Below, piece after piece: positions 13,803 to 60,293 of a stretch of 64,000 nucleotides of DNA. The stretch is from contig NW_025964223.1 in the NCBI RefSeq assembly GCF_023055435.1, forward strand, positions 49,352,001 to 49,416,000. The letters are read 5' to 3'. Made by a program: the position numbers and the translations under genes. Positions within the stretch are counted from its first letter, which is position 1. The number at the start of each line of letters is the position of its first letter. The notes beneath the pieces are model-generated. The model saw only the letters and a list, made by a program, of their open reading frames with translations. It did not search any database and had not been told where the DNA came from. Source of the stretch: Haliotis rufescens. Lineage: Eukaryota.

Positions 13803-14065
13803 TTTTACTTACTTATATTAGGGGATTTTACGTGCGCTTTCCGACTGGAGCGTATTTCGCACACGGGCCCGGCCGGGCCATTTAGTGATATAAAAGGGGA
13901 AGCGAGAAGAGTGCAACCAAGGAGGGGGGTTTAGTGGTTGCTTATATAAAGTTTTGAAATTTTGAGATTCGGAAGACATGCCTTGGGGGAGTGGTTGGGA
14001 CTAAGGGAGTGTGTGGGGGTGAGTTGTTGTTTTTAGATGTTTAGTGTTGGTGGTTTAGTGAATTT

Positions 14066-17827: not shown

Positions 17828-17877
17828 TATTTGGGCTTTTAGTGTTTGGAGATTATGATTTTGGTTTAGGTTTTAAT

Positions 17878-19528: not shown

Positions 19529-20019
19529 GTCTGTGGTTGTGCGTAGGTTGATGTAGTGTGTTTAGGTTTTGTTTGGGGGGAGGAGAGTGAGCTGAGCTTA
19601 AGAGGGGCTTTTGTGTGTAGAGTGGGTGACTGGGTGAGTGGTGTTTGGCTGGCTTCTGCGCTGTTTGGGTTTGTTGGTGAGTTTGTTTATTTAGTTAGGA
19701 GATTTTTTGAGGGTTGGTGTTTTAAGTGGGCTTGGGGGTGAGTTACTTTTGCCTAAGTTTGAAAGGGTGTGTTTGGATAGTAACTAAGGGATTTGTGGGT
19801 TTGGTATTTTAAGTGGGCTTGTGTGTGATTGGTTTTAACCTAAATTGTATGGGTGTGTTGTGATAATTACCGAGGTGTTGCTCTTGGGCTGGCTATCAGT
19901 GGAACTGTGCTGGCTTGGGAGGCTTGCTGGGTGAGGTTGGCTTGGTGGCTGGATGGCTTGGGTTGCTTCGTAGGCTGAGGAGGTGTTGCTAGCTTGGAGT
20001 ACAAACAAATCTTAGTCAA

Positions 20020-21830
20020 TGGTACCCAGGGCTATCTTTAGAGCTTTATATTGAATGGAATTTAGTTTGTTATTAAGAGTTTCTGAGATGGAGCTGAGGA
20101 CCGGGGCAGCATAGTCAATCTTAGATTGAATTAGTGACTTGTATATATTAAGCAGTGTTTGTTTGTCAGCGCCCCAATCAGTGCCGCTGATGGCTCTCAT
20201 TAAATTTAAGTCTTTTTGACATGATGTGACCAAATTATGAATATGGGGGGCCCATGTTAGGTGCTGGTCAAAAGTAATTCCCAGAAATTTGGCTTCCTTT
20301 TTGAATGAAATGGTTTGATCGTTAAGGGTGAGTTTGGGTGTGCAATTTGGCTTATGTCTATTTTTGAAAAGTAGGCCGATGGTTTTATTAGTATTAATTT
20401 GGAATCCCCACTGGGTTGCCCAGAGTTCTATGTGTTTCAGAAGGGGTTGAATTCTTTTTTGGATCTCTTTTATAGATGTTGACGACGTCCAGAAGGAAAT
20501 GTCATCTGCGAATTTTGCAGTAGTTGTTTTTTTAATTTTAGGTGGGAAAATGTCGTCAATCATAAAATTAAAAAGTGTTGGGGAGATTATACTGCCCTGT
20601 GGGGTACCATTGTCTAAAGGATGTGGGTCAGATAGGATGTTGTTGGTTTTAACTGTGATGTTTCTGTCTGTTAGGAAAGAGTGTATGAAATTTAGGATTC
20701 TACCATCTATGGCTTTTGCTTTAAGTTTTTGGATTAGGCCATGATGCCAAACCATATCAAATGCTTTACTAAAGTCTATGAAAATGGCCACAGTATATTG
20801 TTTTTGGGCGAGTGCTGTTTTAACGTCATGTTCTAAATGTAAAACGTGGTCTAAAGTTTGTCGGTTTGACATAAAGCCACTCTGGTCCTCATTAAGTAGT
20901 TTTTGGGAAGAAATTTGGAATTTTAGTCTATTGTTTATGACGGATTCCATTATTTTACAAATATGGGAGGTTAACGAGATAGGGCGGTAGGAATCCGGTT
21001 CTTTGGGGGGGTTGCCTGGTTTGAGAACCGGTACTACCAAAGCTGTTTTCCAAGCATGGGGGAGGGAGCCTGAAGTCCAAATTTGATTGAATAATTGGAG
21101 AAGAAGTTTTTGAATTTTAGGGGGAAGGTGGTTTAGGATAGTATAGCTAATATTGTCTGTGCCTGTGGCTGGGGCTGTATTTTTGTTATTGATGGCTGTT
21201 TGTAGTTCATGTATGTTTATTATTTTATTGTATGACATGCTTGTGAGGGGTGGTCTGGGGGAATAAGTGGGGTGATTTTTAATAGTGTCTTGCATAATGG
21301 GGGTGTGGTTGGCGGAGCTGCTAGTGGCCGAAAAGTGAGCAGCCATGGCGTTAGCCTTTTCTCTATCTGTATTTAGATTAGGGAAGGATGGGGCTGAGAA
21401 GGTTTTTGAAGTGCCCTTTATGGCTTTAAGTTTTTTCCATAAAATTTTGGTATTTTGTTTCCCCATTTTCAAGGAACTGGTAAAAGTTTGCCAATGTTTT
21501 CTTTTGGCTGCTCTTATAAGTTGTTTAGTTGAGTTTCTGAACTGTTTTGCCAAGGGGAGTTTGGTTATGTCCCGCTTGGCTTTATTAAGTGCCTTTTTTC
21601 TAAGTTTTCTAGAATTATCTATTTCTGAGCTCCACCAGGGGACAGTGATATGGTGCGGTGAAGTTTTGACTGTTGGAATGCATTGGAGGGCTATATTGTG
21701 AATTTTGTTTGTGAAGTTTGTATTGAAGATGTCGTTGTCAATGTTGTGTATATTTTGTATGTTTATTTGATTGCAGAGTATGTGGAATGTTTTCCAGTCA
21801 GCCTTTTTAAGATTGAACTTGGGTTGCTGG
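20020..21830 (-). pseudogene. Family C ORF2, N-terminal half (RT)
   Basis: YRPISLTS, DFSKAFD, GTPQGSIISPTLF, KFADD, WGADKQ. Confidence 0.9.
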
Positions 21831-21832
21831 GA

Positions 21833-41343: not shown

Positions 41344-44300
41344 TGACTGACTGACTGATATAGAAGATTTAACGTGCGCTTTCCGACTGCAGCGTATTTC
41401 GCACACGGGCCTGGCCAGACCATTTAGTGTATTCCGAGAAGGGTGAAAGTGGTGTGTGCAACACAAGAGGGGGGCTTTTAGGGGTTGCTTATATCGATTT
41501 TTGAAATTTTAAAATTTGGAATAAATGCCTAGGTGGATGGAGGAGGGAACTAAGGGAGCTGGGTGAGGTGGGTATTTGTATGTTTATTGGATTTTGGGTT
41601 GGTAGATTAATAAGTTTTTAGATGCGCTTAATTAGGCCTGTTTTGATTAGGAATACGCCTAGGGCCTTGAAGTTTTCTAGTTTATTTTGAGGGTTTAGTA
41701 TTTCATCTAGAGTAGGAACCTTATTTAGATTGAGGTTGGTTTGTAGTGTGGTTCTGTGTGTTTGGTAGTGGGTGCAGTGGATGAGTGCGTGTTCTGTGGT
41801 TTCGGGTTGTTCGCAGTGGGGGCAGTTGCCTGTGGTGTGTCTTTTAAGTTGTTTTAGGTGGTTATTTAGGTTCGTGTGTCCTGTTTGGAGTTTTGTAATT
41901 AATCTGTCAATTTTTTTAGAGGGGTGAAGGATTTTAGGTTTGGCTAGTGGTTTTCTGAGCACTTTTTTGACTTGGCTATTTGAGTTTTGATATTGATTAT
42001 GCCATTTTTTGGTTATTTTTTGTTTGTTTACACTTTTAATTTCTGATTTTGAGATGGGTAGGTTTAGGCTTATTTCTGGTATTTTGAGAGATAATTTAGC
42101 TGCTTTATCGGCGCTTTCGTTGCCGTAAATTCCTACGTGGGCGGGGATCCACAAGAAGGTTATTTGTTTGCCTGCTTTTGTTAGGTCGTTGGAGCTTTTA
42201 AGTATTTGGTTTATTAATTTAGGTCGTTTTTTGGTATTTTTGTTTTGGAGGGCTTGTAGTCCACTAAGCGAGTCAGTGAGAATTAGGATTTTTTTGTGGT
42301 TTTTTGATTGTTGGTTATGCAGGGCTGAGGCCATGCCCATAAGTTCGGCCGTGAATGTAGATTGGTTGTTTGGGAGTCGGTAAGATTGTGTGGATATAAC
42401 TGGTTGTGTGGTATGGACTCCGAAACCTGTGTGTTTGGAGATCGGGTCTGAAGATCCGTCAGTGTATATGTGACACCAATTTGGCCAATTTTCGTGTATG
42501 TATGAAAGTGTGGTTGTTTTAGCTATGTTTGGGTCGGTTTGTTTATTTATTTGGTTAGTTAGTGTTGTGTCTATTTGGGGTATTTTGAGTTTAGGGGTGA
42601 AGATATTTGATTTTTTGCAGTTTTGTTTAAGATTTTGAGTTTGGTGTTCATTGAGGTAGTTAGTTATTCTTTGGGATATTGGGGTGAGTAAGGGGTGTTT
42701 GCGAGCTAGAGCTTGGTTTCTTGGGCTAATGTTTTGGTTAATTAGGTTTTGGATGAGAGGGTTTGTTTGGGACGCGGCCCAGAAATTAAGGCTTAGATGT
42801 TCCCTGCGTAGATTTAGTGGCATTTCTCCTGTAAGGGCCTGAAGTGAGGTGTAGGAGGTGCCATGTTGGGTGCGTGTAATTAGTTTAAGGGCTTGGTATT
42901 GGATTGAGTCAAGTTTTTTAGATAGAGAGTGGTTTAGGGTGTTGTATATGGCGCAGCCGTAGTCTAGTTTTGATCTAATTAGTGCTGTATAGAGTGAGAG
43001 GAGGGTATCTTTGGAGGCTCCCCAGTTAGAGCCGGTGAGACATCTTAGTGTGTTAAGGTCTTTGCTGCATCTAGTTTTTAGGTTTTGGACGTGAGCCTCC
43101 CAGGTGAGGTGTTGATCGAAAATAAGTCCTAAGAATTTGGTTTGATTGTTTGGTTGTTTAGCTGGAGGATTGGGTAGGCAGGTTTCATGTTTTTATGTTT
43201 GAATACTACTCCTGTTGTTTTATCTGAGTTAAGGGAGAAGCCCCATTTGTCTGCCCATTGTTGTATTTTATTTAGAGATTTTTGGATTAAGTTTTCTGCC
43301 ATTTTAATGCTTTTAGTGCGGATCCATAGGGCTCCATCATCCGCGAATTTTGAAGTGTTTAGTTTAGGGGATAAGCCCTCGAATAGATCATTTATCATTA
43401 TATTGAAGAGGGTTGGGCTGAGAATGCTGCCCTGGGGAGTGCCATTTTCTAGGGGACACTGGTCCGATAGCGTATGGTCTATACCCACGGTAATTTTGCG
43501 ATTGTTTAGGAAATCTTGGATGAAGTTTATTATTTGGCCTTTTAGTCCTATTTTTTTTAGTTTTTGTATTAGCCCGTGGTGCCATACCATATCGAAAGCT
43601 TTAGAGAAGTCGAGGAATATGCCTATGGTGTATTGCTTGTTAAGCTGTCCTGTTTTTAAATCCTGTTCTAGTCGGGCAAGGTTATCGAGAGTTGATCGGC
43701 CAGGAGTGAAGCCGCTTTGGCCGGGGTTTATGATGTTGTTTTGGTCTAGGTAGTGCTGTAGCCTATTTTTAGTCATAAGTTCCATTATTTTGCAGAGATT
43801 TGAGGTTAGGGATATGGGCCTATAGGAGTTTGCCTGATCTGCTGGTTTATTTGGTTTAGGTATTGGGATTACTAGAGCTTCCTTCCATGAGGATGGGACC
43901 TGTCCGTTTAGGTAAACTAGGTTGTATAGTTTAAGTAAAGTTTGGAGTAGTTTGGTAGGTAAGTGTTTGATTATTTGGTAAGAGGTGAGGTCTAGGCCAG
44001 GGGCTGTTCCTTTTTTTCTATTGTTTAGTACGTGATTTAGTTCTTCTATGGTATAAGGTTGATTTATTTCTAGGTTGTCTTGTCTGATTTCTTTGGAGAA
44101 TTTTATTTCTTTATTTAGTTTATCTTGGAATTTCTTACTGAAGTTACTGTTGCTACTAACTTTAGAGAAGTGTTTGGCTAGGTTGTTGGCCTTTTGGTTG
44201 GGGTTAGTTGAGTTGTTTATATTGGGGCTTTTTTTGTGCCGTTTGATGCCTCGGATGGCGTGAATTTTGCGCCACACCTTCCTAGCGTCGGTGTGGTGGT

Positions 44301-45749
44301 TTAGCTCTTCACAGAATTTTTTCCAGTTTTTGGTTTTAGCAGTTTTAACTAGGTTTTGGACTTGGTGGTTTAGTTCATGAGCTGTTTTGAGATGAGAGGG
44401 GTCTCGTTTAGCTCTGTTGAAAGCTGATTTGCGTTTTAGTCTAGTTAGCTCTATTTCCTCATTCCACCAAGGGACAGTGGGTTTTCCTGGGTTGGATGAT
44501 TTGAAGGGGATTGCGGATTTGGCTGCGTTGATTATGAAGTTAGTTAGGTTTTGACAGAATGTTTCGGGGTCTGTTGTTTCTAAATCGTTTAGATTAGCTT
44601 CGTTGCATAATTCTTGGAATTGGTCCCAGTTGGCGTTTTTGTACTGAAATTTAGGTTCCTGTTTAGGGGTTTGATTTGGTATTTTTATATTTCCTAGGGT
44701 TATATTTATGGGAAAGTGGTCGCTGCCTCGAGGTACTGGGTGGACGTCCCACATCAGACTTTGTGCTAAGTCTGGCGTACATATTGTTAAGTCGATAGCC
44801 GACATGGTGTGGTGGATTTTGTCGTATCTAGTTGGTTGGTTATTGTTTAATAGTATTAGGTCATTTTTTTCGATCCACTCTGATATTAGTTGTCCATGGT
44901 TGTCTAGTTTATCTGCAATGCCCCAGGTAGGATGATGGGCATTGAAGTCTCCTAGGAAGATTGTTGATTTATTTCCTAATTGGTAAAGGATGTCTAGGTC
45001 TGTATCTTTAATTGGTTTTAGTGTTGAGTGATAGATGTTAATGATTTTTATTTTTTGGTTATTGATGGTGACTTGGATTCCATTAGCTTCTAGATTAGGA
45101 GTGTTTACTTTAACTTCCTCGTAGTTAATATCCTCTCTAACGTAGATGATTAGACCTCCTCCTGTTCTGCCTGGGATGGTTTTGGACCTGTCGGTTCTTA
45201 CTGCGTTATAATTTGGTAGGTTGAATTTAGTTTTATGTGAGAATTTGGTTTCTTGAATACAAGCTACATGGGGACCTTTATCTATTTTGAATTTAGTTTT
45301 AAGTTCAGAACCATGGCCGGCGAGGCCATTGGCATTCCATTGAAAAATGTTTAGGCCTTCCATTGGGAAACTGGGTGGATTTATGTTTGGTTTAGGCTTG
45401 GTTTAGGTATTTACTTTAGTAGGTTATTAAGGTTGCTGCTGAAACGGTCGAAAGAGGTGGTGACGAGTTTTAGTTTATGTGCTACACCAAAGAAGGCTTT
45501 GGAGCTGGCTTCTGGATTAGACTGCTTTAACATGTAAGCTAGTAGGAGGACTAAGTTGTTTAGTTTTTTGCTTGCTACGTTTTGGGTGAGTTTTTTTCTA
45601 TAGCTTTTGGTTTTGGGGGCTGACAAGGTAAGATCGTTTATTTCCTCTGAGGATGTGTACTCGTCCTCTTCGGTTAAGTTATCTTTAGTTTGGTCACTCT
45701 CTTCGGTGGTGGGTTGCATGCTGGGTTTGGGTGTGAGAGTCTGAGTGGT
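41344..45749 (-). mobile_element. Non-LTR retrotransposon family D (diverged relative of A), 5'-truncated in ORF1
   Basis: 10-bp TSD tacgagagaa (41334-41343 and 45750-45759), (TCAG)n tail, ORF1 C-terminus at 45411-45749. Confidence 0.95.
41618..45363 (-). pseudogene. Family D ORF2 (APE-RT-RNase H-CCHC), frameshifting deletion near 43140
   Basis: The 744-aa and 401-aa ORFs are colinear with family A ORF2. Confidence 0.9.
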
Positions 45750-46812
45750 TACGAGAGAAGCACAGAGAGCGAATGTCACTTCCCCACAGACAGCCCGGCT
45801 GATACTCCGGAGGCGCGGACGTCGGAGGAGACACCCTGCTTGTTGTGGCTGATAGCTGCACGCTTACAAGCGCGTGTGCTTTTTCGTGTATTTGTATCCG
45901 AATAATCACTTATTAATCAAGGAAAGTTTCAATTTCAACAATACAGTTAGGTAGTAAAAACATTTGGCTACATTTCGGTTACAATAGCAACGCTCACGGG
46001 TGAAGTTCAAAGCCACACGTGCTGTTTCCAATGAAGCGACCCAGTCTAAAATGTAGACATCGCTACTTTCAAAAGCACATTTTTAGCCTTGAGACTCAAG
46101 TTTTTGCATTTTAAACGTTGCCTGTCAATTCTCAATATATCTAACTATGAAAGTAAAACACAACACTCATCAGTATTGCCTATGATAAGCTAGAACAAGC
46201 GTTCAAACAACGACAATGAAGCACGTTTTTCTGACGACTTCGCCATTTTGCAACAGAAAACATTTGACACTATATTTCTGGAGACATAATTTTGGTCACT
46301 TCAGTTAGAGTTGAAACTAACTTTGTCATAACAAGTAAGTAACGGGGATTTTACTTTCAGGAAAACAGTCTAGTAAGACGAGGATCTCGGGACACAAGCA
46401 GCTAGGGCGCGAAGCCCCGAACAGTAACATATATACATAGGTGATTAGATCACTCGATCGGTCGTCACAGATTAAGTCTTTTTGCCTGTCTTAATAGCAC
46501 GATATTAGTAGGGGTCTTCGTCGTTTGGATGTTAATATTACCAGAACAATATAGGCTACAATGCATCAACGAAAAGTGAATGTTTCAGACGAAAGGCCGG
46601 ATCGAGTGAGCGAGTGTGCCGGGCCTCGTGTTAATCAGTGATCACATGTTTTTACAACGGCTAGATTTTAATCCCTGTAAATATACATCATAAATCAACA
46701 AACACAACATGTCTACTGAACCCGCTGAAAACGCGAGCATGCTGTTTTCATGGCAATGTCTGTTTACCAATGTGCGGTGTCTATATGTAGCTAAAGTTTG
46801 CCGATAAGCATT

Positions 46813-46829: not shown

Positions 46830-47411
46830 TGTTACAGTGCATATATTTCATTACACTTTTTATATTTTTAACAAATTAAACTTAAACTAGGAAATTCTAA
46901 AATTCGAAAGTCGCTAGACCAGTATTTCTCGTTTTTATCGCCACTGGTCGACCATGACGGCTGCTCCTCGGCAAGCTCATTCACGCGAACAGTAAATTAC
47001 GTAATCATAGATACAGTCGGCGCGTACGTCCGCCCCGGCCCTTGTTCTCTTGATAAATGTTTTGTTACCAGCTGGCGCAGGTTTTGACCACCATCTTAAA
47101 CTGTAATTAAAACAAACTCTTCTCAGGCAATACTGATACCATTCTATTACCACCTGCTTTTGTGTAGTCAACTTTGACAGCCCAGGGCAGATAACAGAGA
47201 CCGAAATTACAACTTCAAAGTTATTGTTAATGTGATAAGAGTAGAGCTGTGGGGGTATATAACTCCTTGGGTGTTGGTCCTCAGCACACTTGCTTGAATA
47301 AACCTTAAGGACCTCACAGCTCTCTTCTCTCTTGTTTCAAGGCTAGCTCCCAATAGCTCATTCCCCAAACCGAGGCCTGACAGTCATTGGAATCCCAAAA
47401 AGGCTGTCTTA
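46830..47411 (+). repeat. 5' LTR (TG...TA)
   Basis: Matches 54825-55406 except ~2 substitutions seen. TATATAA at ~47256 and AATAAA at ~47297. Confidence 0.95.
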
Positions 47412-47413
47412 AT

Positions 47414-47425
47414 TGGTGGAGACGT
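47414..47425 (+). promoter_or_regulatory. Primer-binding site, probably tRNA-Ala
   Basis: TGGTGGAGA 2 nt after the LTR, complementary to the UCUCCACCA 3' end typical of tRNA-Ala. Confidence 0.65.
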
Positions 47426-47612
47426 TCGATCCTCGGTGCCTGGAGCCAGCCTTGTGAACTACAAGTTGAGACTGTGACGTTACCTGTACCTGACTCCACA
47501 CTACCACCACCACCTCCACAGCTTGACACCACACTATGCCTGCTGACACCATCGTCCCCTACAGAAGCAACAACACAGTCAGTCTCATCTTACCCAGCAA
47601 CAACCCCCAGTA

Positions 47613-49946
47613 ATGGCACAGATACATCTCCCCAAATACACAGGTCAGCAGGATGCTGAAAGTTGGTGGGCAGATTTCTACAACTTCAACTTCCTCCATG
47701 GTCACACAGACACCCAATCCTGTAGAATTCTACCCTTCTACCTGGACGGAGCTGCTAAAGTATGGTTCAGGGACCTGCCTGCGCACACACAGCTTGACAT
47801 CCACTTGCTGAAAGCGGCCTTTCAGCAACGATTTCGCAGTTCATCAGCCTTCAATTTGAGTCTTCTTGATATGACACAGAAGGAACAGGAGGACGTTGGA
47901 GACTTCATCACCAGGGTCCAAGCATCCGCGTTACACTCCTGCTTACCACAATCTGTGATAGTAGCCATTGCAATCAATGGGCTACTCCCACAGATTAAGC
48001 AGTGGGTGTATATGAAGGAGCCATTGACCCTGGATGAGGTTCGTCACCATGCCCAACTGGCTGTACAATCGCAGGCCCCAAGCAAGGAAGAGGTCAGCTT
48101 GGTCCAACAAGTTGAGCAATTTACGAACTTGGTGACCATGCTGATCACTACAAACAAGGTCTGTGCTGTACAATCAGCAACTCCCTCATCCCACCATCAG
48201 CAGCACGAGCCCCAGGTCCAGCAACAGCCACCCTCCCCATCACCAAGATACCACCAGCAACCACAACAGGAACCATACCAACCACAAGAGGATCCATACC
48301 AGTCACCACAGCAGTACCAACCACCACAGGAACAATACCAACCACCACAGGATCCATACCAGTCACCACAGGAACCATACCAGTCACCACAAGAACCATA
48401 CCAACCACCACAGGAACCATACCAGTCACCACAGGAACCATACCAACCACCACCACAGCAGTACCAACCACTACAACATCAATACCAGATACGGCAGGAA
48501 CAATATCAACCACCACAGCACTATCAGCCACCACAGAAGGAGTATCCAGTTCCACCACCTCAGCCCCACCACACAGCACAGCAACAACAACAGACGCCAT
48601 CCTTCTATCCGTACAGCTCCAGCAACAGTCAAAGTCTGCCAATTCCACAGCACCTTCGAGGCAGATGTCGCGGATGTGGTGAGTTTTTTCGGTTCCCTCA
48701 CAATTGCCCTCATAGAAATACAGTCTGTAATTATTGCTCACGCATAGGTCACCATGCAAAGGTATGCATGCGCGCATACTATGCACAATATCAACAGCCA
48801 CAGGGACTCATACCTGATACTCAGCGTTCTGGGGTCAGGCAAGAGTCAGCCTTTGTATCACTTGTTGCTCCCTTGACAAAGAACACTGTTCATGTCAAGG
48901 TTAAACAAGTGAGAACTACAGCTCTTGTTGACACAGGTGCATCAGTTAGCTGTGTCAGCATGGGCTACTTAAACAAGGTTGGCATCAAACCCTCTCATTT
49001 ACGCCCATCTCACCTAACTGAAATCATAGGTGTAGGTGGTGAAAAACATTCTGTGCTAGGTTCTGTCTCTCTTGACATTAACATAGGGCATATCTACCTC
49101 CCCCAAATCTTTCATGTCTTTCACAACTTACATCACTCTCTCATCTTAGGCATTGACTTCCTTGAATTAAACAAAGTCACTATAGACCTGCCCTCAAAAT
49201 GTCTTCACATACACGAAGGTCTTGTTTCAGTCTCTCTGGCATCAATCAATGGAGGCTACGCAAGACCATGCAAGGCTGTAATTATTCCTCCACACTCTCA
49301 AGCTGACATTCCCATCAAAATTTCTCATTGTCAACAAGGTCAAGTTTTTCTTCTTGAACCAGTTCCGGCATTAAATGACATGCAGCTCCAAGGTGCTAAG
49401 TGCCTTATAACCAACAATCCAAAATCAGCTTGCATGAGATTGCTTAATGCGAGTGACAGCCATGTCACTTTATATTCAAAAACAGTGGTTGCTGTAGCCT
49501 CAGAGATTGACCCCACATCTGTCCTTGACCTTCCTGACACTTCTGATTCTGATCCTCCTACTACTACAAGTGCTAACACAACACATTCACAGGACATTGA
49601 CTTTGATCTTAGTGATGCAGACCTCACACATGAACAACAAACACATTTACGTGCATTTCTCCAATCACAAAGGTCAGTTTTTGCCTCAGATTGGTCAGAA
49701 TTAGGACACACCCACTTACATCAACACAGAATAGAAACAGGTGATGCCAGACCGATTAGACTCCCTTTTTACAGGCAAAACGCAGCCATTAGAAAAGAAT
49801 GTTCTAGACAGGTAAAAGAAATGTTAGATGCCAATATCATTCAACCTAGTTCTTCTGAGTGGCACTCACCTGTTGTCATGGTTAAGAAACGTGACAGCTC
49901 TTACCGCTTTGCCGTAGATTATAGACGCCTCAATGCAGTTACTTAG
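47613..49946 (+). CDS. Gypsy Gag, aspartic protease and start of RT
   Basis: LDGAAKVWF (gag), CNYCSRIGHHAKVC knuckle, LVDTGAS, ILGIDFL, SPVVMVKK..RFAVDYRRLN. Confidence 0.93.
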   Translation: MAQIHLPKYTGQQDAESWWADFYNFNFLHGHTDTQSCRILPFYLDGAAKVWFRDLPAHTQLDIHLLKAAFQQRFRSSSAFNLSLLDMTQKEQEDVGDFITRVQASALHSCLPQSVIVAIAINGLLPQIKQWVYMKEPLTLDEVRHHAQLAVQSQAPSKEEVSLVQQVEQFTNLVTMLITTNKVCAVQSATPSSHHQQHEPQVQQQPPSPSPRYHQQPQQEPYQPQEDPYQSPQQYQPPQEQYQPPQDPYQSPQEPYQSPQEPYQPPQEPYQSPQEPYQPPPQQYQPLQHQYQIRQEQYQPPQHYQPPQKEYPVPPPQPHHTAQQQQQTPSFYPYSSSNSQSLPIPQHLRGRCRGCGEFFRFPHNCPHRNTVCNYCSRIGHHAKVCMRAYYAQYQQPQGLIPDTQRSGVRQESAFVSLVAPLTKNTVHVKVKQVRTTALVDTGASVSCVSMGYLNKVGIKPSHLRPSHLTEIIGVGGEKHSVLGSVSLDINIGHIYLPQIFHVFHNLHHSLILGIDFLELNKVTIDLPSKCLHIHEGLVSVSLASINGGYARPCKAVIIPPHSQADIPIKISHCQQGQVFLLEPVPALNDMQLQGAKCLITNNPKSACMRLLNASDSHVTLYSKTVVAVASEIDPTSVLDLPDTSDSDPPTTTSANTTHSQDIDFDLSDADLTHEQQTHLRAFLQSQRSVFASDWSELGHTHLHQHRIETGDARPIRLPFYRQNAAIRKECSRQVKEMLDANIIQPSSSEWHSPVVMVKKRDSSYRFAVDYRRLNAVT
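48260..48545 (+). repeat. 21-bp coding minisatellite in gag (YQ[S/P]PQ[E/D/Q][P/Q] heptads)
   Basis: About 13 ccaccacaggaaccataccaa-like units. Confidence 0.9.
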
Positions 49947-52900
49947 CCTATATTTTTTCCTCTGCCACGTTTTGAAGATGTCGTTGATGCCGTAGGTGAC
50001 AGCCATGCCAAAATCTTTAGTGTGCTTGATTGTGCTAGTGGCTTTTGGCAAATACCACTCCACCCAGATACAAAACACAAGTCCGCCTTCATTACGCCTG
50101 ATGGTGTTTTTGAATGGAATCGCCTTCCTTTCGGCCTCAAAAATGCTCCTATGGCATTTCAGCAAACCATTTCAGAGGCACTAAAAGAGATGAATTGGCG
50201 TTACATATTGATATATGTCGATGACATAATAATATTTTCTAAAACCTTTTCTGAACATCTGAATCACCTCAAGGCAGTATTCCAAAAGATCAGTGAAGCA
50301 GGCCTCACTCTAAAACCCAGCAAATGTAAATTCGCGACAAAACAAGTTACCTACTTAGGGCATATCTTCAGTAAAGATGGCATCCATGTTGATCCTTCCA
50401 AAATAGATTCAGTCACACAGATTCCACCTCCTAAAAATGTCCATGACGTGCGCCATTTCCTAGGTTTGGCATCATATTATCGGAAATTTGTAGCAAACTT
50501 TTCGGGCATTGCCTCCTCTCTTTACAATCTCCTTAAAAAAGATGCATCTTTCGAATGGTCATACAATTGTCAACAGGCATTTGAAAAGTTAAAACATGCC
50601 CTTACAACTGCACCCATCCTCGCATACCCTGACCAAAACCAACCCTTCATCCTCACAACTGATGCATCACAAACTGCAATAGGGTACATCTTAGGCCAAC
50701 TTGATCCTCAAGGTAGAGAACATGTAATATGTTATGGCGGCCGCTCTCTCCATACTGCTGAAAAGAATTGGGGTATCACACATCTAGAATGCCTGGCCGT
50801 CCTAGAAGGTATTAAAAACTTCAGGGTGTACCTTGCAAATGGATCATTTTCTGTTTACACAGACCACAAAGCTCTGACTTGGCTTAAGAAAACCAAACAT
50901 GACTCTGGTCGCCTTAGTAGATGGTCCCTAATGCTGCAAGAGTATGATTTTGAGATCATACACAGGCCAGGCAAAGCCAACACAAATGCAGATGCCTTAT
51001 CTCGCATTCCTCATGCAGAGCAAGTACATCAACCTAACACTGATGATATACCCTCCCCACCCATTTCAACAGAACCCATATCATCAACCCGTACATATGC
51101 ACAAGTAGCTGCCACTGCTTCATCTCCACTCTTACCCACTCCAACTTCACATTCGATGTCACCATCAAGCAGCCTCAAAGTGTTATTCCCTCATCACCAA
51201 GGCAACATGAGGTCTACACCCTTGACTGCCACTTCTCACCATTATGCCAATCCCAGTACAGGCAACAAGAGGTCTACACCCTCGACTGCCCATACTTCCC
51301 ATTATGCCAATCCCAATACAGGCAACAAGAGGTCTACACCCTCGACTGCCACTTCTCACCATTATGCCAATCCCAATACAGGCAACAAGAGGTCTACACC
51401 CTTGACTGCCACTTCTCACCATTATGCCAATCCCAATACAGGCAACAAGAGGTCTACACCCTCGACTGCCCATTCTTCCCATTATGCCAATCCCAATACA
51501 GGCAACAAGAGGTCTACACCTTCGACTGCTCATTCTTGCCATTACGCCAATCCCAATGCAGGCAACATGAGGCCTACACCCTCGACTGCCTCTTCTCTCC
51601 AACATGCTAATTCTCACTCAGCCAACAAGAGGTCTACACCTTCGACTTCCTCCACTCGCCAATATGCTTATTCAAAAGCAGGCAATATGAGGTCTGCACC
51701 CTCAACAGCCTTATCTCACAAACCAGCCAGCCGTGCTCATCCATGTCCCATACCACCTACTGACAAGAAGATAAACGAGTCGGTCACCACTGCTACAAAA
51801 TCCTCCAACAACAGTGTCCACACCGAACTACCATTCATGTCTCGTCCCTCCAGCCAACTGAGGTCTTCTTCCTCTTCAACCAAATCATGCTCATCTCCAC
51901 AAAACAACTTTCCAAAGCATACAAACATTGACAATGGCACTCTTGACTCACACAGTGTCTCATCAGAAGATATCGGTAGAGATGACATAACATCCTCTAT
52001 ATCTGTAGACTTTGTCTACAAGTCGGGTCCTCCCGATCCTCCTTCAGGCCCTATGGTCTTTGCTATAGGAACTGATCTTGATGATAAAGACTTGGCAGAA
52101 AAGCAACGTAAATCCCCTGACCTTCGTCCAATCATGGACTACATTGAAAAAGGTGAAATTCCTTCCACCTATACAGATGTTCAAGTCAAGGGTCTAACTG
52201 GCCTTGCTCAAGAGTATGACATACGTGATGGTATTCTGTACCACTTCTTTCATGCAAAGCATCGAGGTCAGAAAAACAATCGCCCTCCTATGGTAACACA
52301 GCTAGCTGTCCCTGTCTGCTGTCGCAAAGAGCTTCTTTTTGCCTACCATGATTCCAAAGCTGGTGGTTGCCACTTTGGACGAGATGCAACTCGTCAGACA
52401 ATACTCACAAAGTATTACTGGCCAGGCTTATACCAGGATATTGAGAATTATGTCAAGTCCTGTGATGACTGCCAACGCTCCAAAAAAAGGACAAACGCCA
52501 AGCCAGCACCAATGGTGCCCATGCCTATTGAGGACACATTCTCACGTCTCCATGTTGACATCCTCGGACCATTGCCTGAGACTAAGGAAGGTTATAAGTA
52601 TGTTCTCCTTGCAGTTGATTCCTTCTCACGCTGGACTGAAGGTTTCCCTATGCGCACTCAAGAAGCCTCCGAGGTTGCATCAATCCTGTTCACTAAGGTT
52701 TTCTCACGGTTTGGTGCTCCCCGTACTCTTCTTACTGACAGAGGTAGGCAGTTCACTTCCAAGCTAGTAAATGCTCTCTGTGAACTCCTCGATATCAAGC
52801 ACTACTACACTTCGTCCTACCACCCCCAGACTAATGGGATGTGTGAAAGGAGGAACAGTGTCATAGAGCAGGCTCTCCGAAGATATGCTGACCCTGATCA

Positions 52901-53852
52901 GACCAATTGGGCCAAACTCATTCCATGTGTTATGATGGCCATGCGCAATGTACCTTGTCAATCTACAGGGTATTCACCACACTACCTTCTGTTTGGAAAG
53001 GAAATGAATCTTCCTTTTGACACAACCTTGCTGCCTAAATCTACCCTCGGCAAAGATGCACAGGGTCATCTTCAAGATCTCTTGAAAAATCTGAATGTTG
53101 CAAAATCCCTTGCAAAGGACAACATGTCTGCTGCTCAGGATAAAAGCAAGAATCTTCAGGATGTCAGAAACAAGGAACCTTCATTTGCAGTTGGTGATCA
53201 GGTTCTCATGACTGATCCAACTGTCAAAACTGGCCTTTCCCCCAAACTGTCAAAGAAATGGATAGGACCTTACAGAATCATTCGCATCGGTCTTAACCAT
53301 ACTTTCAAACTACTGAACACTAACACAAACAAAGAACATAAATCCTTCATTCATGCCAACAGACTTAAAACTTATACACCTCCAACCCCTCGAAGACAAC
53401 CTGCACAACCAGCTCAGCATCTAGCAACACCCACTCAGTCGACGGCCTCCCAGCCTGACAATCCTCGTAGAGAAGCCTCACAAACAGCCCAGCATCAATC
53501 AACTCCAACTCAGTCAACATCCTCCCATCCTGACAACCCTACCACAACACAGCACACTTCCGTAGAGGATCCCATTATGCTACCTCACTCGTCTGATAAC
53601 TCTGACACTATTCCACAGAGTCCCACATCATCTACCCAACCAGATGATCAACTTTATGCTGTAAAACGCATACACAAAGCTAAAAAGAAGTCAGGAGTAA
53701 CTCATTACCTAATTGAATGGGAAGGTTACCCTCAACGCACCTGGGAACCTGCCTCCAACCTTAGTGCGGAAATGATAAGTGATTACCATACATTTAGAAC
53801 AGGATCTGGTCACAGACGGAAACGGAAACACAGATATTTTGCAAAATCATAG
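49947..53852 (+). CDS. Gypsy Pol (RT, RNase H, integrase, GPY/F, chromodomain), in frame after a single TAG
   Basis: LPFGLKNAP, YVDD, TTDAS, TDHKAL, H..H..CDDC, HVDILGP, TDRG, ERRN, WIGPY, YLIEWEGY..TWEPASNL. Confidence 0.93.
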   Translation, partial: PIFFPLPRFEDVVDAVGDSHAKIFSVLDCASGFWQIPLHPDTKHKSAFITPDGVFEWNRLPFGLKNAPMAFQQTISEALKEMNWRYILIYVDDIIIFSKTFSEHLNHLKAVFQKISEAGLTLKPSKCKFATKQVTYLGHIFSKDGIHVDPSKIDSVTQIPPPKNVHDVRHFLGLASYYRKFVANFSGIASSLYNLLKKDASFEWSYNCQQAFEKLKHALTTAPILAYPDQNQPFILTTDASQTAIGYILGQLDPQGREHVICYGGRSLHTAEKNWGITHLECLAVLEGIKNFRVYLANGSFSVYTDHKALTWLKKTKHDSGRLSRWSLMLQEYDFEIIHRPGKANTNADALSRIPHAEQVHQPNTDDIPSPPISTEPISSTRTYAQVAATASSPLLPTPTSHSMSPSSSLKVLFPHHQGNMRSTPLTATSHHYANPSTGNKRSTPSTAHTSHYANPNTGNKRSTPSTATSHHYANPNTGNKRSTPLTATSHHYANPNTGNKRSTPSTAHSSHYANPNTGNKRSTPSTAHSCHYANPNAGNMRPTPSTASSLQHANSHSANKRSTPSTSSTRQYAYSKAGNMRSAPSTALSHKPASRAHPCPIPPTDKKINESVTTATKSSNNSVHTELPFMSRPSSQLRSSSSSTKSCSSPQNNFPKHTNIDNGTLDSHSVSSEDIGRDDITSSISVDFVYKSGPPDPPSGPMVFAIGTDLDDKDLAEKQRKSPDLRPIMDYIEKGEIPSTYTDVQVKGLTGLAQEYDIRDGILYHFFHAKHRGQKNNRPPMVTQLAVPVCCRKELLFAYHDSKAGGCHFGRDATRQTILTKYYWPGLYQDIENYVKSCDDCQRSKKRTNAKPAPMVPMPIEDTFSRLHVDILGPLPETKEGYKYVLLAVDSFSRWTEGFPMRTQEASEVASILFTKVFSRFGAPRTLLTDRGRQFTSKLVNALCELLDIKHYYTSSYHPQTNGMCERRNSVIEQALRRYADPDQTNWAKLIPCVMMAMRNVPCQSTGYSPHYLLFGKEMNLPFDTTLLPKSTLGKDAQGHLQDLLKNLNVAKSLAKDNMSAAQDKSKNLQDVRNKEPSFAVGDQVLMTDPTVKTGLSPKLSKKWIGPYRIIRIGLNHTFKLLNTNTNKEHKSFIHANRLKTYTPPTPRRQPAQPAQHLATPTQSTASQPDNPRREASQTAQHQSTPTQSTSSHPDNPTTTQHTSVEDPIMLPHSSDNSDTIPQSPTSSTQPDDQLYAVKRIHKAKKKSGVTHYLIEWEGYPQRTWEPASNLSAEMISDYHTFRTGSGHRRKRKHRYFAKS
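51201..51730 (+). repeat. 60-bp coding minisatellite between RNase H and integrase
   Basis: About 9 copies of ggcaacaagaggtctacaccctcgactgcc..., encoding GNKRSTPSTATSHHYANPNT. Confidence 0.93.
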
Positions 53853-54824
53853 GTCTTGACCTTCCATGCTATTCCTCCTGGCAACAAGTCATCATTTGTC
53901 AAGGTATATGAGCTCTGACCACCCCCTACAGGTAATCAAATTGCCATGTGTTCTATAAGTGCTACGCAGTGAAATGTTGTGGCCACAACTTTCCTGCAAC
54001 AATGGTCATCCCATCTGACTTGTACTTTGGTTTCTTTTTGTCTTTGGTCCATCATGGAGAGCCACTATCCTTGAGTTCGGCTGATATTCGTGCCTCCTGT
54101 CCTGAGTGACCTCGCTTTGCCTCCAATACCTAACTAAGATACGTACACGTCAACTACCGTTAATCTCTCGTTGTCATCACCACCTTAACAGACTACAATG
54201 TTTCCATTCTGTTAGGAATCTTGGCTGTTCCTTGGGCAGCATTTCTCATCCTTGTCTCAAAATCTCAACTGTCTTCTCCAAGACTTGAGTGTGCCACAAT
54301 TCCAATTCTTCCACTCACTCTGTGCCTTCCTATTGGCATATCCAAACGCCTTCTGGTGCCTCACTTCCCACACATTCACAAACTCTTTAAGCACCCCTTT
54401 GCCACCTATATCCTAATATTTCACAACGGATACTTTCAAATCGTAGACCTAGCGTGATGTGAAATGTTTGACAGTGTCAGGGCAAATTGTTGGGGAACGC
54501 TAAAAACTCCCTCATCACAAAACAACCTTTCCTCATATTATGTATGTTCTTGTTAACCGGTTTCCTTTTCACAGAAATGCTTGTTCATTACTTCAAATTG
54601 TCATTTTTCTTGTAGTTTAATATGTAGGTATGTTTCAGAATCTTTGTAATGGAAATCGTGTGCCTTATGTTTTCAACTGATCAAACTATCTTCATGCACA
54701 CATTTGTTCATGTCCAACGTAATCTATTGTATCATTGTATTCTGATTATCTATGTATATTCGCTTCATTTTAATCCTTTTCTTTTGGCTTTTGAGGACAA
54801 AAGCTCCACGACGCACAGGGGTAT

Positions 54825-55406
54825 TGTTACAGTGCATATATTTCATTACACTTTTTATATTTTTAACAAATTAAACTTAAACTAGGAAATTCTAAAATTC
54901 GAAAGTCGCTAGACCAGTATTTCTCGTTTTTATCGCCACTGGTCGACCATGACGGCTGCTCCTCGGCAAGCTCATTCACGCGAACAGTAAATTACGTAAT
55001 CATAGATAAAGTCGGCGCGTACGTCCGCCCCGGCCCTTGTTCTCTTGATAAATGTTTTGTTACCAGCTGGCGCAGGTTTTGACCACCATCTTAAACTGTA
55101 ATTAAAACAAACTCTTCTCAGGCAATACTGATACCATTCTATTACCACCTGCTTTTGTGTAGTCAACTTTGACAGCCCAGGGCAGATAACAGAGACCGAA
55201 ATTACAACTTCAAAGTTATTGTTAATGTGATAAGAGTAGAGCTGTGGGGGTATATAACTCCTTGGGTGTTGGTCCTCAGCACACTTGCTTGAATAAACCT
55301 TAAGGACCTCACAGCTCTCTTCTCTCTTGTTTCAAGGCTAGCTCCCAATAGCTAATTCCCCAAACCGAGGCCTGACAGTCATTGGAATCCCAAAAAGGCT
55401 GTCTTA
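54825..55406 (+). repeat. 3' LTR
   Basis: Direct repeat of 46830-47411. Confidence 0.95.
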
Positions 55407-56746: not shown

Positions 56747-57310
56747 TTAAGCCTTCTTTGGCTTGACTGCCTTCTTCTTGGGGGTCTTGACCTTCTTGGG
56801 TTTGGCTGCTGCCTTCTTGGGTGTCTTCGCCTTCTTGGGCTTGGCTGCAGCCTTCACCTTCTTTGGTGACTTAGCGGCCTTCTTAGCGGCTGTTTTGGGT
56901 TTCTTGGCAGCAGCTGGCTTCTTGACTTTCTTGGGGGATTTGGCAGCCTTCTTTGGTTTGGCAGCTGCCTTAGCCTTCTTGGGTTTTTCGTCTTTCTTTG
57001 CCTCGCCAATACGGAATGATCCAGCGGCTCCAGTTCCCTTTGATTGCTTCAGTGCGCCATTCTTGACTCCATTTTTCAAAGCAGTCTTGATGCGAGCATT
57101 GATGGCCACCTGGTTGTCACCGACCTTGTAGTTGGCCAAGATGTATTTCAGAACAGCCTGTCGGGAGGAACCACTCCTCTCCTTCAGGGATGAAATAGCT
57201 TTCTTGATCATCTCCAAATAGGTAGGATGTGCGGCAGCCTTCTTAGGCCTGGCAGCAGCCTTCTTCTTGGGAGTCTTGACAACAGCGGGGGCAGCAGCAG
57301 CATCAGCCAT
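56747..57310 (-). CDS. H1: Histone H1 (K21R and L-to-I variant; promoter separated by LINE B)
   Basis: 187-aa H1 with several private substitutions. Confidence 0.97.
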
Positions 57311-57382
57311 AGTGGTAAGTTTGAGTGGTAAAAATTCACGTCAGCTACGAGAGAAGCACAGAGAGCGAATGACACTTCCCCA

Positions 57383-59300
57383 GTCAGTCAGTCAGTCAGT
57401 TTCTTAGTTTTAACGACCCCTTCTAGCATAGCTAATTTCGGGGTCGGGATGGCCCCGTTCTAGTAGATAGGGAGAATTTGAAAAATAAAGTCCTGATAAT
57501 GACGTGAATAGTGGAGATATGCTAAGGTAGCCACCCAAAAAAATGTAAGGTTTTATGGGGCAGGGGAATCGGGTGGAGGGCTGGGTGGTTGGTGTGTTGG
57601 GACTTGGCGTAGCGATTTATTTGGAGTATTTATAGTTGGTTATGTTTTGTGTGGTTTGTGTAAGAATTAGAAATTATTTGATAGTTTTCTTAAGTTGTTT
57701 TTGTGTCACGCGGGTTTTGTTAGGAAGGATAGTGGGCAGTGAGTAAATAACGATTTGGGATTTTAGGGTGTTTTTTGTGTGGTTTTTGTTGTTGTTGTTG
57801 TTGTTGTTGTTTTTTGTGGGTTTTTTAAATGTCTTGGGGGAGGTGCGTTTGGTTTATATCCGTTAGGTAGTTGGATGGATGATTGTGTCGCTTTTGTGGG
57901 TGGTGTTAGATTAGTTTTATGATATCTGTTTTTGTGATATAATTTATGATTGTTTTTTGTATTTGTGGGGGATTGTGGGGGGATAGGAGTGTGTGGATAG
58001 TTTTTGTGTATTTTGCATCTAGTGTGTTGATGTACTGTATTCTGTGTGGTAAGTAGAGTGTGCACGTGTAGAATAAGTGCTGTATTGTTTGGGGAACTAC
58101 ACATGTGGGGCAGAGCCCAGTGGAATGGCGAAAGTTTAATTTTGTGATGCCTACATATAGCCTGTTTAGTGCGGATTGTATATTACGTGAGTTGCTAGAA
58201 AGATTTACTTTATTGATTTGTTTATTTATTGTTTTGTATGTCCATGTGGCGGGGGAGGTGTGCAGTTGTTTGAAGTTTTCTTGGGTTATTAGTTTATTTA
58301 TGATGGATTTATATTCCTGTTTGCTGTATGTCAGTGGGTAATTAATATGTTTATTTTTTGCTGCTTGTTTGGCCGCTTGATCTGCCTTTTCGTTTCCTGT
58401 GATCCCAATATGTGAGGGTACCCATGCAATATTGATTTGTTTATTCTGTTCTGTTAATGTTTTCGTTAAGTGTAGTATTCGGTGTAGTAGATGTGGCCTG
58501 TTTGTGTAATTTCTGTTTTTAATTGATTGTATTGAGCTAAGTGAATCTGTGAGGATTAGAAGTTTGTTTTGTGTTATTGTCTCTGCCATTTTGAAGGCCA
58601 TATAGATTGCTGTTTTTTCGGCGGTATGTATGGATAGGTGGTTTGGGATGCGTGCTGATGTGGTGGTTATGTTTGGTTTGGTTGTGTGTATTGCGAAGGC
58701 TGTTGTGTGGTCCGTCGGGTTGTGTGACCCGTCTGCGTGGATGTATGTCCAGTCTGGCCAGTGTTGTTGTATGTAATCCATTGCCATTATTTTTTGTTGG
58801 TGCTTGTTTGATGTTATTTTTGTGATGTTTGTTAGACCAGTGTCAGTATGAGGAGGTGGCAGGTGATATGAGTAGTCATGAATGACAGGGGTGAGTTTTA
58901 TGTTTTTAAGTTTGTATGTTTTGAGAAGGTGGTTTAGCCGAATGGTGAATGGGAGTCTTCGTCTTTTTTTGATTAGTTTGACTTTCTGTCTTAGTGGTAG
59001 ATTTTCTGTTGTTGCTATGAGGCTGCTTAACAATGGGTTTGTGCATGCTGTAGCCCAGTAGTTTAGTGTGATTTGTTTGCGTTTAAGGGGGAGAGCTATT
59101 TCCCCAGTGAGCTTTAAGAGAGATGTGAGTGCTGTGCCTGATATTGTACCTAGTGAGATTGATAGTGCTTTGTATTGTATTGAGTCTAATTTCTTGGAGT
59201 CTGTTTGTGTGAGTGCGTCGTATGCGGGTGCGGCGTATTCTAACTTGGGTCGGATGAGTGTTTTGTAGACAGTAAGTAGCGTGTGCTGGTCTGCTCCAGC
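57383..59300 (-). mobile_element. Non-LTR retrotransposon family B, 5'-truncated copy 2
   Basis: 11-bp TSD acacttcccca (57372-57382 and 59301-59311). RNase H/CCHC ORF at 57906-59300. Confidence 0.95.
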
Positions 59301-60293
59301 ACACTTCCCCACAGACAGCCCGGCTGATACTCCGGAGGCGCGGACGTCGGAGGAGACACCCTGCTTGTTGTGGCTGATAGCTGCACGCTTACAAGCGCGT
59401 GTGCTTTTTCGTGTATTTGTATCCGAATAATCACTTATTAATCAAGGAAAGTTTCAATTTCAACAATACAGTTAGGTAGTAAAAACATTTGGCTACATTT
59501 CGGTTACAATAGCAACGCTCACGGGTGAAGTTCAAAGCCACACGTGCTGTTTCCAATGAAGCGACCCAGTCTAAAATGTAGACATCGCTACTTTCAAAAG
59601 CACATTTTTAGCCTTGAGACTCAAGTTTATGCATTTTAAACGTTGCCTGTCAATTCTCAATATATCTAACTATGAAAGTAAAACACAACACTCATCAGTA
59701 TTGCCTATGATAAGCTAGAACAAGCGTTCAAACAACGACAATGAAGCACGTTTTTCTGACGACTTCGCCATTTTGCAACAGAAATCATTTGACACTATAT
59801 TTCTGGAGACATAATTTTGGTCACTTCAGTTAGAGTTGAAACTAACTTTGTCATAACAAGTAAGTAACGGGGATTTTACTTTCAGGAAAACAGTCTAGTA
59901 AGACGAGGATCTCGGGACACAAGCAGCTAGGGCGCGAAGCCCCGAACAGTAACATATATACATTGGTGTTTAGATCACTCGATCGGTCGTCACAGATTAA
60001 GTCTTTTTGCCTGTCTTAATAGCACGATATTAGTAGGGGTCTTCGTCGTTTGGATGTTAATATTACCAGAACAATATAGGCTACAATGCATCAACGAAAA
60101 GTGAATGTTTCAGACGAAAGGCCGGATCGAGTGAGCGAGTGTGCAGGGCCTCGTGTTAATCAGTGATCACATGTTTTTACAACGGCTAGATTTTAATCCC
60201 TGTAAATATACATCATAAATCAACAAACACAACATGTCTACTGAACCCGCTGAAAACGCGAGCATGCTGTTTTCATGGCAATGTCTGTTTACC

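Follow-up and report, generated by a model that had tools for sequence, protein, structure and literature searches.

Probable repeated insertion of a young LINE lineage at one nucleotide upstream of histone H1 in a tandem H1-5S array of Haliotis rufescens

Target-specific long interspersed nuclear elements (LINEs) are known almost only from ribosomal DNA (rDNA), telomeres, small RNA genes and microsatellites. For R1 and R2, variable classes of 5′ junction are taken as markers of separate insertion events. Tx1-clade elements and elements with a restriction-like endonuclease (RLE) (Keno and Utopia in U2, Mutsu in 5S) are inserted inside the RNA gene by sequence recognition. Ty3, a long terminal repeat (LTR) element, integrates at the starts of genes transcribed by RNA polymerase III (Pol III), and the Dictyostelium element TRE5-A about 50 bp upstream of tRNA genes. 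Most of the target-specific families belong to the early-branched, Tx1 and R1 groups (PMC4640811), and 5S types have been linked to sequence-specific LINEs (PMC5340908). The element considered here, family B, is found twice in the window (the whole 64,000-nucleotide stretch of Haliotis rufescens DNA that was analysed, C445:49352001-49416000), which is part of a tandem array of histone H1 and 5S rRNA genes (H1-5S array). The youngest lineage of family B was probably inserted repeatedly, in a targeted manner, at one nucleotide upstream of H1 by target-primed reverse transcription (TPRT). Neither full-text literature searches nor a 2026 review of how histone genes are organised in over 250 species yielded a LINE targeting histone genes.

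Family B at the H1 site of the array

The H1-5S array covers 546 kb of C445 and includes about 110 units of 3000 bp (reference unit: window 29425-32424); among the matches listed, all empty-site hits are located between 49.27 and 49.81 Mb. Each unit carries a 5S rRNA gene on the plus strand and, on the minus strand, a gene encoding a 187-aa histone H1 with a histone 3′ stem-loop. Read in H1 sense, the insertion site is ggaGTATCAgccgggctgtctg, then the nick, then tggggaagtgTCATTCgctc, a 61-nt leader and the ATG. The nick is located 72 nt upstream of the H1 ATG, 18 nt past a TATA-like motif (GTATCA) and 12 nt before the A of an initiator-like (Inr-like) motif (TCATTC). According to these two motifs, the site can reasonably be placed in the H1 promoter, and the A of TCATTC would be the H1 start site. 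The features of the array and of its target are as follows (CDS, coding sequence; positions are those of the window).

30451-30569, plus strand: 5S rRNA gene of the reference unit (Rfam RF00001, 111.5 bits).
31705-31750, minus strand: histone stem-loop of the reference unit (Rfam RF00032).
4568-5131, minus strand: H1 CDS of the unit holding copy 1 of B.
56747-57310, minus strand: H1 CDS of the unit holding copy 2 of B, with its ATG 72 nt from the insertion point.
29413-29445, minus strand: empty target in an intact 3000-bp unit, GACACTTCCCCA then the nick then CAGACAGCCCGGCTGATAC.
29443-29438, 29425/29424 and 29414-29409, H1 sense: TATA-like GTATCA, nick and Inr-like TCATTC of this empty target, respectively.
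2209, 10911, 32424, 35369, 38370 and 45786: end positions of the further empty sites in the window.

The 12-mer target occurs 11 times in the window, against 0.33 expected; this excess is explained by the window being a 3.0-kb tandem array, not by element B.

5192-5203, minus strand: target GACACTTCCCCA beside copy 1, with the nick at 5203/5204.
5204-8644, minus strand: family B copy 1, a 5′-truncated LINE of 3441 bp.
5204-5216: tail of copy 1, (GTCA)3G.
57372-57382, minus strand: H1-proximal copy of the target-site duplication (TSD) of copy 2, ACACTTCCCCA (11 bp), ending at the recurrent nick 57382/57383.
57383-59299, minus strand: family B copy 2, a 5′-truncated LINE of 1917 bp.
57383-57399: tail of copy 2, (GTCA)4G on the plus strand, that is (TGAC)n in sense; the 3′ untranslated region (UTR) is next.
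57906-59297: remnant of open reading frame 2 (ORF2) of copy 2, aa 807-1269 of 1269 (end of the reverse transcriptase (RT), RNase H, C-terminal CCHC), a stop-free single frame.
59300-59311, minus strand: 5′ junction of copy 2; a C at 59300, untemplated or element-derived, is followed by ACACTTCCCCA at 59301-59311.

Copies 1 and 2 both directly follow GACACTTCCCCA, are both on the minus strand, as H1, and have the same 3′ junction, gcgaatgacacttcccca / GTCAGTCAG, at window 5203/5204 and 57382/57383. Their 5′ ends differ. The ORF2 remnant of copy 1 (aa 297-1269) is a single open frame. At its 5′ junction (8644/8645), which shows a 2-nt (CT) microhomology, the flank restarts at CTCCGGAGG; relative to empty units, 18 bp of the target, CAGACAGCCCGGCTGATA, are deleted. 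Copy 2 is flanked by the 11-bp TSD, with an intact upstream flank, CAGACAGCC, beyond the distal TSD copy. Its 5′ joint shows microhomology with B (GCTCCCCAGCTTGTTCCCC in full-length B, GCTCCAGCACACTTCCCC at the joint), and its ORF2 remnant is 99.1% identical to the full ORF2 of a full-length copy, L031 (tblastn, one frame). The two copies differ at 0.9% of sites across their shared 3′ 1.4 kb, and in the number of tail repeats (three and four). The first-pass annotation had described a twin insertion at the identical nucleotide in the H1 orientation, with unlike 5′ ends and with differences in single nucleotides (SNPs) and tail length; the junctions, read directly, agree with this description in all respects.

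Genome-wide, the empty-site pattern GACACTTCCCCACAGACAGCC has 108 matches, about 104 of them in empty units; the other four are copies of TSDs flanking B. The filled junction GACACTTCCCCAGTCAGTCAG is found exactly four times: in the two window copies, at C445:49551598 and at C445:49579910. No other element beginning at the same nucleotide was found genome-wide, the sole other match being a C>T SNP of the empty site. The two extra filled sites (L031 and L032) are 28.3 kb apart and 99.78% identical over 10 kb; they are one insertion event copied by segmental duplication and are counted as copy 3. Both ORFs of copy 3 are open (ORF1, 572 aa; ORF2, 1269 aa). Its 5′ end, ...GCTGATC, is followed by a 56-bp repeat of the H1 leader (TSD), and the last 95 bp or so of the 5′ UTR are absent. 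A 5′-truncated element of a sister family, X, is nested in this 5′ UTR with an 11-bp TSD, TACTGCTTCTT; the 28.3-kb segment was duplicated whole, including B and the nested X.

C445:49557754-49559984 (L031 7155-9385): X nested in copy 3.
C445:49268122-49271757 (L033 2123-5758): copy 4 locus, at the left edge of the array.

The 5′ part of copy 4 (L033) is 1.0% diverged from copy 3 and includes the complete 5′ end of the family, GATTTAAATCGAA; this end was set from two C334 copies, both of which stop at that base where unrelated DNA begins. In copy 4, the 5′ end joins TGACACTTCCCCA / CAGACAGCC at a distance from the nick of 13 nt (17 nt with a CGAA microhomology). The 3′ part is 2.9-3.5% diverged, has an internal gap of 2.6 kb and adjoins non-array DNA. 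The locus is read as a young H1-site copy that would have been fused by deletion to an older neighbouring B and would thereby have lost its 3′ junction. The left edge of the H1-5S array coincides here with a B element. TGACAC flanks copy 4 on both sides, at a distance of 10 nt from the tail on one side and abutting the 5′ end on the other.

The identical 3′ junction is found in three distinct events (copies 1, 2 and 3), and the fourth is joined to the same promoter by its 5′ end. Relative to the single first nick, four classes of 5′ junction are observed: +18, -11, -56 and -13/-17.

Public data were examined as Logan contigs, which give presence only. In four organisms, the contigs include B at 95-99% identity or more, its depth being low compared with H1, as well as the empty site, whose depth is high. 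The full 5′ end of B is joined to ACACTTCCCCA in one contig of organism C; among the contigs shown, none from other organisms bridges the 3′ junction. These data bear on whether the pattern comes from a collapsed or mis-joined repeat array in the assembly. Tandem arrays with nested repeats are hard to assemble, no bridging reads were seen for the 5′ junctions of copies 1 and 2, and the public data are contigs only. The junctions are nevertheless clean, with TSDs and microhomology, real SNPs distinguish the flanks, and the independent public runs hold B, the empty site and the junction of the B 5′ end with H1. An assembly artefact is accordingly considered very improbable.

Separate insertion events and competing explanations

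The copies at the H1 site differ from one another by 0.1-1.0%, and the nearest copy elsewhere by 2-4%. With the 3′ end, the RT region and the 5′ end as queries, identity of 98% or more is found only in the array, except for one 225-bp stretch on C556. This RT-region match (98%) was considered as a young copy outside the array and rejected: it belongs to a rearranged copy, 89-96% identical overall. Family B has about 10-20 copies in 1.33 Gb. Since the number of random hits expected in the 330-kb array is far below 1, three further hits at the same base and on the same strand are not due to chance.

Flanks were compared over 840 bp on the left (20 units) and 520 bp on the right (27 units); the units were taken from the window, from the occupied units and from eight sampled 6-kb stretches of the array. 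The array has regional haplotypes, with informative SNPs in both flanks. Copy 1 has the type of its window neighbours, copy 2 the window type or an intermediate one, copy 3 the majority type of its own neighbours and copy 4 the type of its neighbour. Each occupied unit matches the units around it in haplotype, and no "B haplotype" is shared among them. Copies 1 and 2 are distinguished from copy 3 at the four haplotype-defining sites located within 260 bp of the insertion. Copies 3 and 4 are not interderivable by deletion within one unit. A derivation of copy 2 from copy 1 was also considered and rejected: copy 2 keeps 29 bp of target that are absent from copy 1, and the flank haplotypes differ. 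The first-pass annotation had proposed independent events and, as the check on them, a search for signs that copy 2 arose from copy 1 by rearrangement. This check was run and the flank haplotypes go against such a derivation; the proposal is further supported by the 29 bp of retained target and by the two extra classes of 5′ junction. Independence of the insertion events is thus supported by the flank haplotypes, short of proof.

The youngest lineage would have been inserted at least three times, probably four, by TPRT at one nucleotide. The first nick, on the bottom strand, would be fixed at CTTCCCCA / CAGACAG, 72 nt upstream of the ATG, the element always being in the H1 orientation. The second-strand break and the joining of the 5′ end would vary, giving either the 18-bp deletion or TSDs of 11, 13-17 or 56 bp, with microhomology at each 5′ joint and 5′ truncation. 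The multicopy array would tolerate the loss of a few H1 units, as rDNA does with R1 and R2. The recorded features are those of TPRT: one junction carries the tail, the extent of 5′ truncation varies, as does the TSD or target deletion, and LTRs are absent.

Several observations weigh against repeated targeted insertion. Seven more B copies with intact tails are found on C334, C556, C612, C605, C190 and C445 (32.8 Mb and 49.268 Mb); they have unrelated flanks and are 3-13% diverged. The C334 copy, which carries a nested insertion of about 19.6 kb, has its own clean 9-bp TSD, ACTAAGCCG. Contigs from other runs add two more non-H1 3′ flanks of B. Because the older copies have unrelated flanks, strict sequence specificity for H1 is not a trait of family B as a whole. 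The presence of nearly all members in the target, a feature of target-specific LINEs, is found for the lineage with at most 1% divergence only, not for the family. The proposal of an H1-promoter-specific retrotransposon made in the first-pass annotation therefore holds for the youngest lineage, found only at the H1 site, and fails for the family, as its own check on the flanks of other copies revealed. At most, specificity is confined to the youngest lineage; alternatively, the element has a preference for gene starts. Copy 4 lacks a 3′ junction, so that the position of its first nick is a deduction and not an observation. The divergence of the B copies (0.5-1%) equals that of the array units, and age cannot separate the models. 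Formally, one microhomology-mediated deletion in a full-length ancestor resident at H1 would suffice to produce any of the truncated H1 copies; for copy 3, it would be a one-unit deletion from GGTGTAAAAT (B 5′ UTR) to GGTAAAAAT (next H1 leader).

These last points are those expected if a single full-length insertion was spread by unequal crossing-over and its 5′ ends were later varied by deletions or illegitimate recombination with nearby H1 sequence. Segmental duplication of an occupied unit is directly seen (L031/L032), microhomology is present at every 5′ joint, copy 3 is obtainable from an ancestor of the copy 4 type by a one-unit deletion at a 9-bp imperfect repeat, and both the divergence of B and the lack of specificity of older copies are compatible with this explanation. 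It requires, however, three deletions that each end, on the flank side, no more than about 75 bp from the nick (-56, -11, +18) in a 3000-bp unit, a clustering with a chance probability of roughly (75/3000)^2 to (75/3000)^3. The local haplotypes differ at 260 bp or less from the element, and gene conversion would need to extend as far as the element yet leave it in place. The occupied units are 50-230 kb apart, among empty ones. A single insertion is hence held to be unlikely, without being negligible.

The retention of the recipient's own flank haplotype would also be expected from abortive gene conversion (synthesis-dependent strand annealing). In this scheme, an occupied unit would serve as template for the repair of breaks arising close to the active H1 promoter in empty units; copying from H1 into B would stop and be resolved by a microhomology join. 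The outcome would mimic an exact 3′ junction together with a truncated 5′ end and either a TSD or a deletion. All junction types and microhomologies are reproduced in this way. Against it, breaks clustered within about 75 bp would be needed three times, the complete 5′ end of copy 4 with its 13-17-nt duplication is left unexplained, and the tails differ in length among copies (3 versus 4 repeats). Moreover, this geometry recurs at 5S in the sister family X, whose insertions appear to differ in length, as retrotransposition predicts. Abortive conversion is accordingly given little credence, and repeated targeted insertion of the youngest lineage by TPRT is preferred.

The dispersal of close relatives indicates that specificity was gained recently; a comparison of young and old endonucleases could show how specificity arises.

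Choice of the site and families X and X2

The site might be chosen by a sequence-specific cut of the AP-endonuclease-like domain (APE) of B, gained recently, or by tethering of the element to a promoter complex about 12 nt upstream of the start. A third possibility, targeting by homology between B and the H1 unit, was rejected. The longest stretches shared by B (L031 1011-7166 plus L033 5672-5758) and the 3-kb unit do not exceed 15 nt, against up to 14 nt in shuffles. No read-through copy (3′ transduction) with the H1 leader was found elsewhere in the genome, the four filled junctions all being in the array. Homology guidance is not supported because of the absence of both long shared stretches and transduced leaders. 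The tail of B and the primer have only two bases in common, CA/UG.

Tethering is favoured by four observations: the unrelated targets of older copies, the TCAKTY motifs, the location of X at 5S and a rebuilt H1 initiator. TCAKTY is found 4-12 nt downstream of two of the seven dispersed B copies (about 0.5% by chance for a pattern found post hoc). When B is full-length and has a 13-nt TSD, the H1 initiator, gtgTCA|TTCG, is restored at its own 5′ end. No RNA gene was detected by Rfam beside dispersed B or X2 copies, and a search for host-gene ORFs directly downstream of dispersed copies gave nothing convincing. For B, tethering is put forward purely as a conjecture drawn from these observations.

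Family X has a (TAAG)n tail and is inserted 9-11 nt upstream of the 5S +1, in the 5S orientation, in six units of the array.

Window 27380-27460; C445:49433385, 49483920, 49697673, 49723357 and 49774703: X at 5S.

The spacings of X-bearing units (about 6.1, 6.9, 7.2 and 9.25 kb) differ, which suggests different truncations and so separate events. B has no insertions in 5S itself. The presence of B at H1 and of X at 5S suggests a targeting of gene starts. In a wider and tentative interpretation, possible more than probable, B and X would be I-group LINEs that locate transcription starts by position, tethered to the pre-initiation complex and not guided by recognition of a long DNA sequence: both would insert 9-13 nt upstream of +1 in the orientation of the gene, B at H1 transcribed by RNA polymerase II (Pol II) and X at 5S transcribed by Pol III. 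B would then be transcribed from the H1 core promoter and be kept in the array as R1 and R2 are in rDNA.

A further LINE, X2, is inserted in the H1 leader.

41344-45750, minus strand: LINE X2 (APE-RT-RNase H, sense tail (GTCA)n), with a 10-bp TSD, TACGAGAGAA.

This window copy is 27 bp from the B site and in the same orientation as B; it is not family B. X2 is a relative of X; it shares 44% identity with B in ORF2, and its tail repeat is the complement of the B tail repeat. It is very young, abundant and dispersed: 2216 first-look candidates, many copies 99-100% identical, unrelated flanks. X2 3′ ends with the same flank recur every 6.36 kb or so at C2:11.426-11.463 Mb and C598:1.434-1.470 Mb (L061, L064-L068), which indicates that an X2-containing unit was itself tandemly amplified on these two contigs.

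When the unit is mapped onto the window, the array is found to be interrupted by the two B copies, X2, a LINE composite, a Gypsy element, a further LINE and two small deletions.

11928-27442: LINE composite of 15.5 kb at the 5S gene.
46834-55404: Gypsy-type LTR element inside the 5S rRNA gene (unit positions 1038-1046).
From 60294: further LINE interrupting the array.

In the composite, a LINE with an (AGT)n-type tail (window 11928-12000) is in the opposite orientation and begins 11 nt upstream of 5S; the X copy on its other side shares this target, and the two are arranged head to head. With the Gypsy element and these LINEs, the 5S start region is a second insertion hot spot of the unit. The unit-internal deletions are located at window 10741-10748 and 32580-32583; one takes unit positions 2113-2837 (most of an H1 gene) and the other positions 156-214.

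Classification of family B and comparison with known systems

Family B is a non-LTR retrotransposon of about 6.2 kb with a sense 3′ tail (TGAC)n. The 1269-aa ORF2 of L031 has the order APE-RT-RNase H followed by a C-terminal Cys/His motif (Exo_endo_phos, aa 23-235, E 1e-12; Exo_endo_phos_2, E 5e-18; RVT_1, aa 522-773, E 1e-41; RNase_H, aa 991-1119, E 3e-15). A Pfam search with ORF1 gave no match; three CCHC knuckles, CTICHLFGHAQSNC, CSKCSSEFHNSTEC and CINCDQYDHTAFSNTC, are read in its translation. The sole PDB match to the B APE is the TRAS1 endonuclease (E 4e-4). TRAS1 is a telomere-specific element of the R1 clade. RNase H after RT is listed for the I-group clades I, Nimb, Ingi, LOA, R1, Tad1 and Outcast (PMC4640811). 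Judging from these domains, B is an APE-RT-RNase H LINE of the I group, compatible with the R1 clade as well as with I/Nimb. The first-pass annotation had called it I/Nimb-like: the domain order and the ORF1 with three CCHC knuckles fit the I group, and the narrower I/Nimb part is a label only, R1 being compatible too.

The loci L014, L019/L022, L023, L024/L026, L029 and L030 have in common with B only the last 50 nt or so of its 3′ UTR (TTTCTTAGTTTTAACGACCCCTTCTAGCATAGCTAATTTCGGGGTC) and the tail. They are short elements or other LINE families, which may be passengers resembling short interspersed nuclear elements (SINEs) or relatives with the same 3′ recognition module. In L027 (C112:69184876-69184923), a 46-bp B-type 3′ end with a (GTCA)n tail runs directly into (CTTA)n, an X-type tail. 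It resembles the product of reverse transcription that switched templates from one of these LINE families to the other.

I-group LINEs: B shares with them the ORF1 with three CCHC knuckles, the APE-RT-RNase H ORF2, the C-terminal Cys/His motif and, as with the I factor, a tail of simple repeats. To our knowledge, I-group clades other than R1 are not known for target specificity.

Tx1 and RLE elements: as for B, the targets are tandemly repeated, highly transcribed small genes. Unlike them, B inserts upstream of the gene start, and it has an RNase H after the RT.

Ty3 and TRE5-A: the geometry is likewise set by the transcription start and not by a shared target sequence (X, 9-11 nt from 5S; B, 12 nt from the Inr-like motif). 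In contrast to B, these elements use Pol III factors, and Ty3 belongs to the LTR elements; the parallel is drawn from B at H1 and X at 5S, not from the dispersed B copies. We know of no Pol II histone promoter target for Ty3 or TRE5-A.

R1 and R2 in arthropod rDNA: the likeness includes a 3′ junction that is precise and does not vary, 5′ junctions that do (by truncations and by small deletions or duplications), and the occupation of a minority of units, in host-gene orientation, in the tandem array of a highly expressed multicopy gene. For the R1 clade, it extends to the APE, that of B being most like the TRAS1 endonuclease among solved structures. The differences are the target of B, upstream of a Pol II histone H1 gene instead of in rRNA coding sequence, the dispersal of its older members at unrelated sites and its (TGAC)n tail.

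The reuse of one nucleotide in a Pol II histone core promoter would add a new class of "safe-haven" target. If this nucleotide is chosen by its position relative to the start, as the parallel with X at 5S suggests, no LINE known before B would have read a Pol II promoter in this way, which would bear on integration targeting. On the host side, the locus shows how a histone/5S array absorbs and inactivates units. By analogy, the behaviour of B appears closest to that of R1 and R2 in rDNA; if position is what is read, Ty3 and TRE5-A would be the closest systems.

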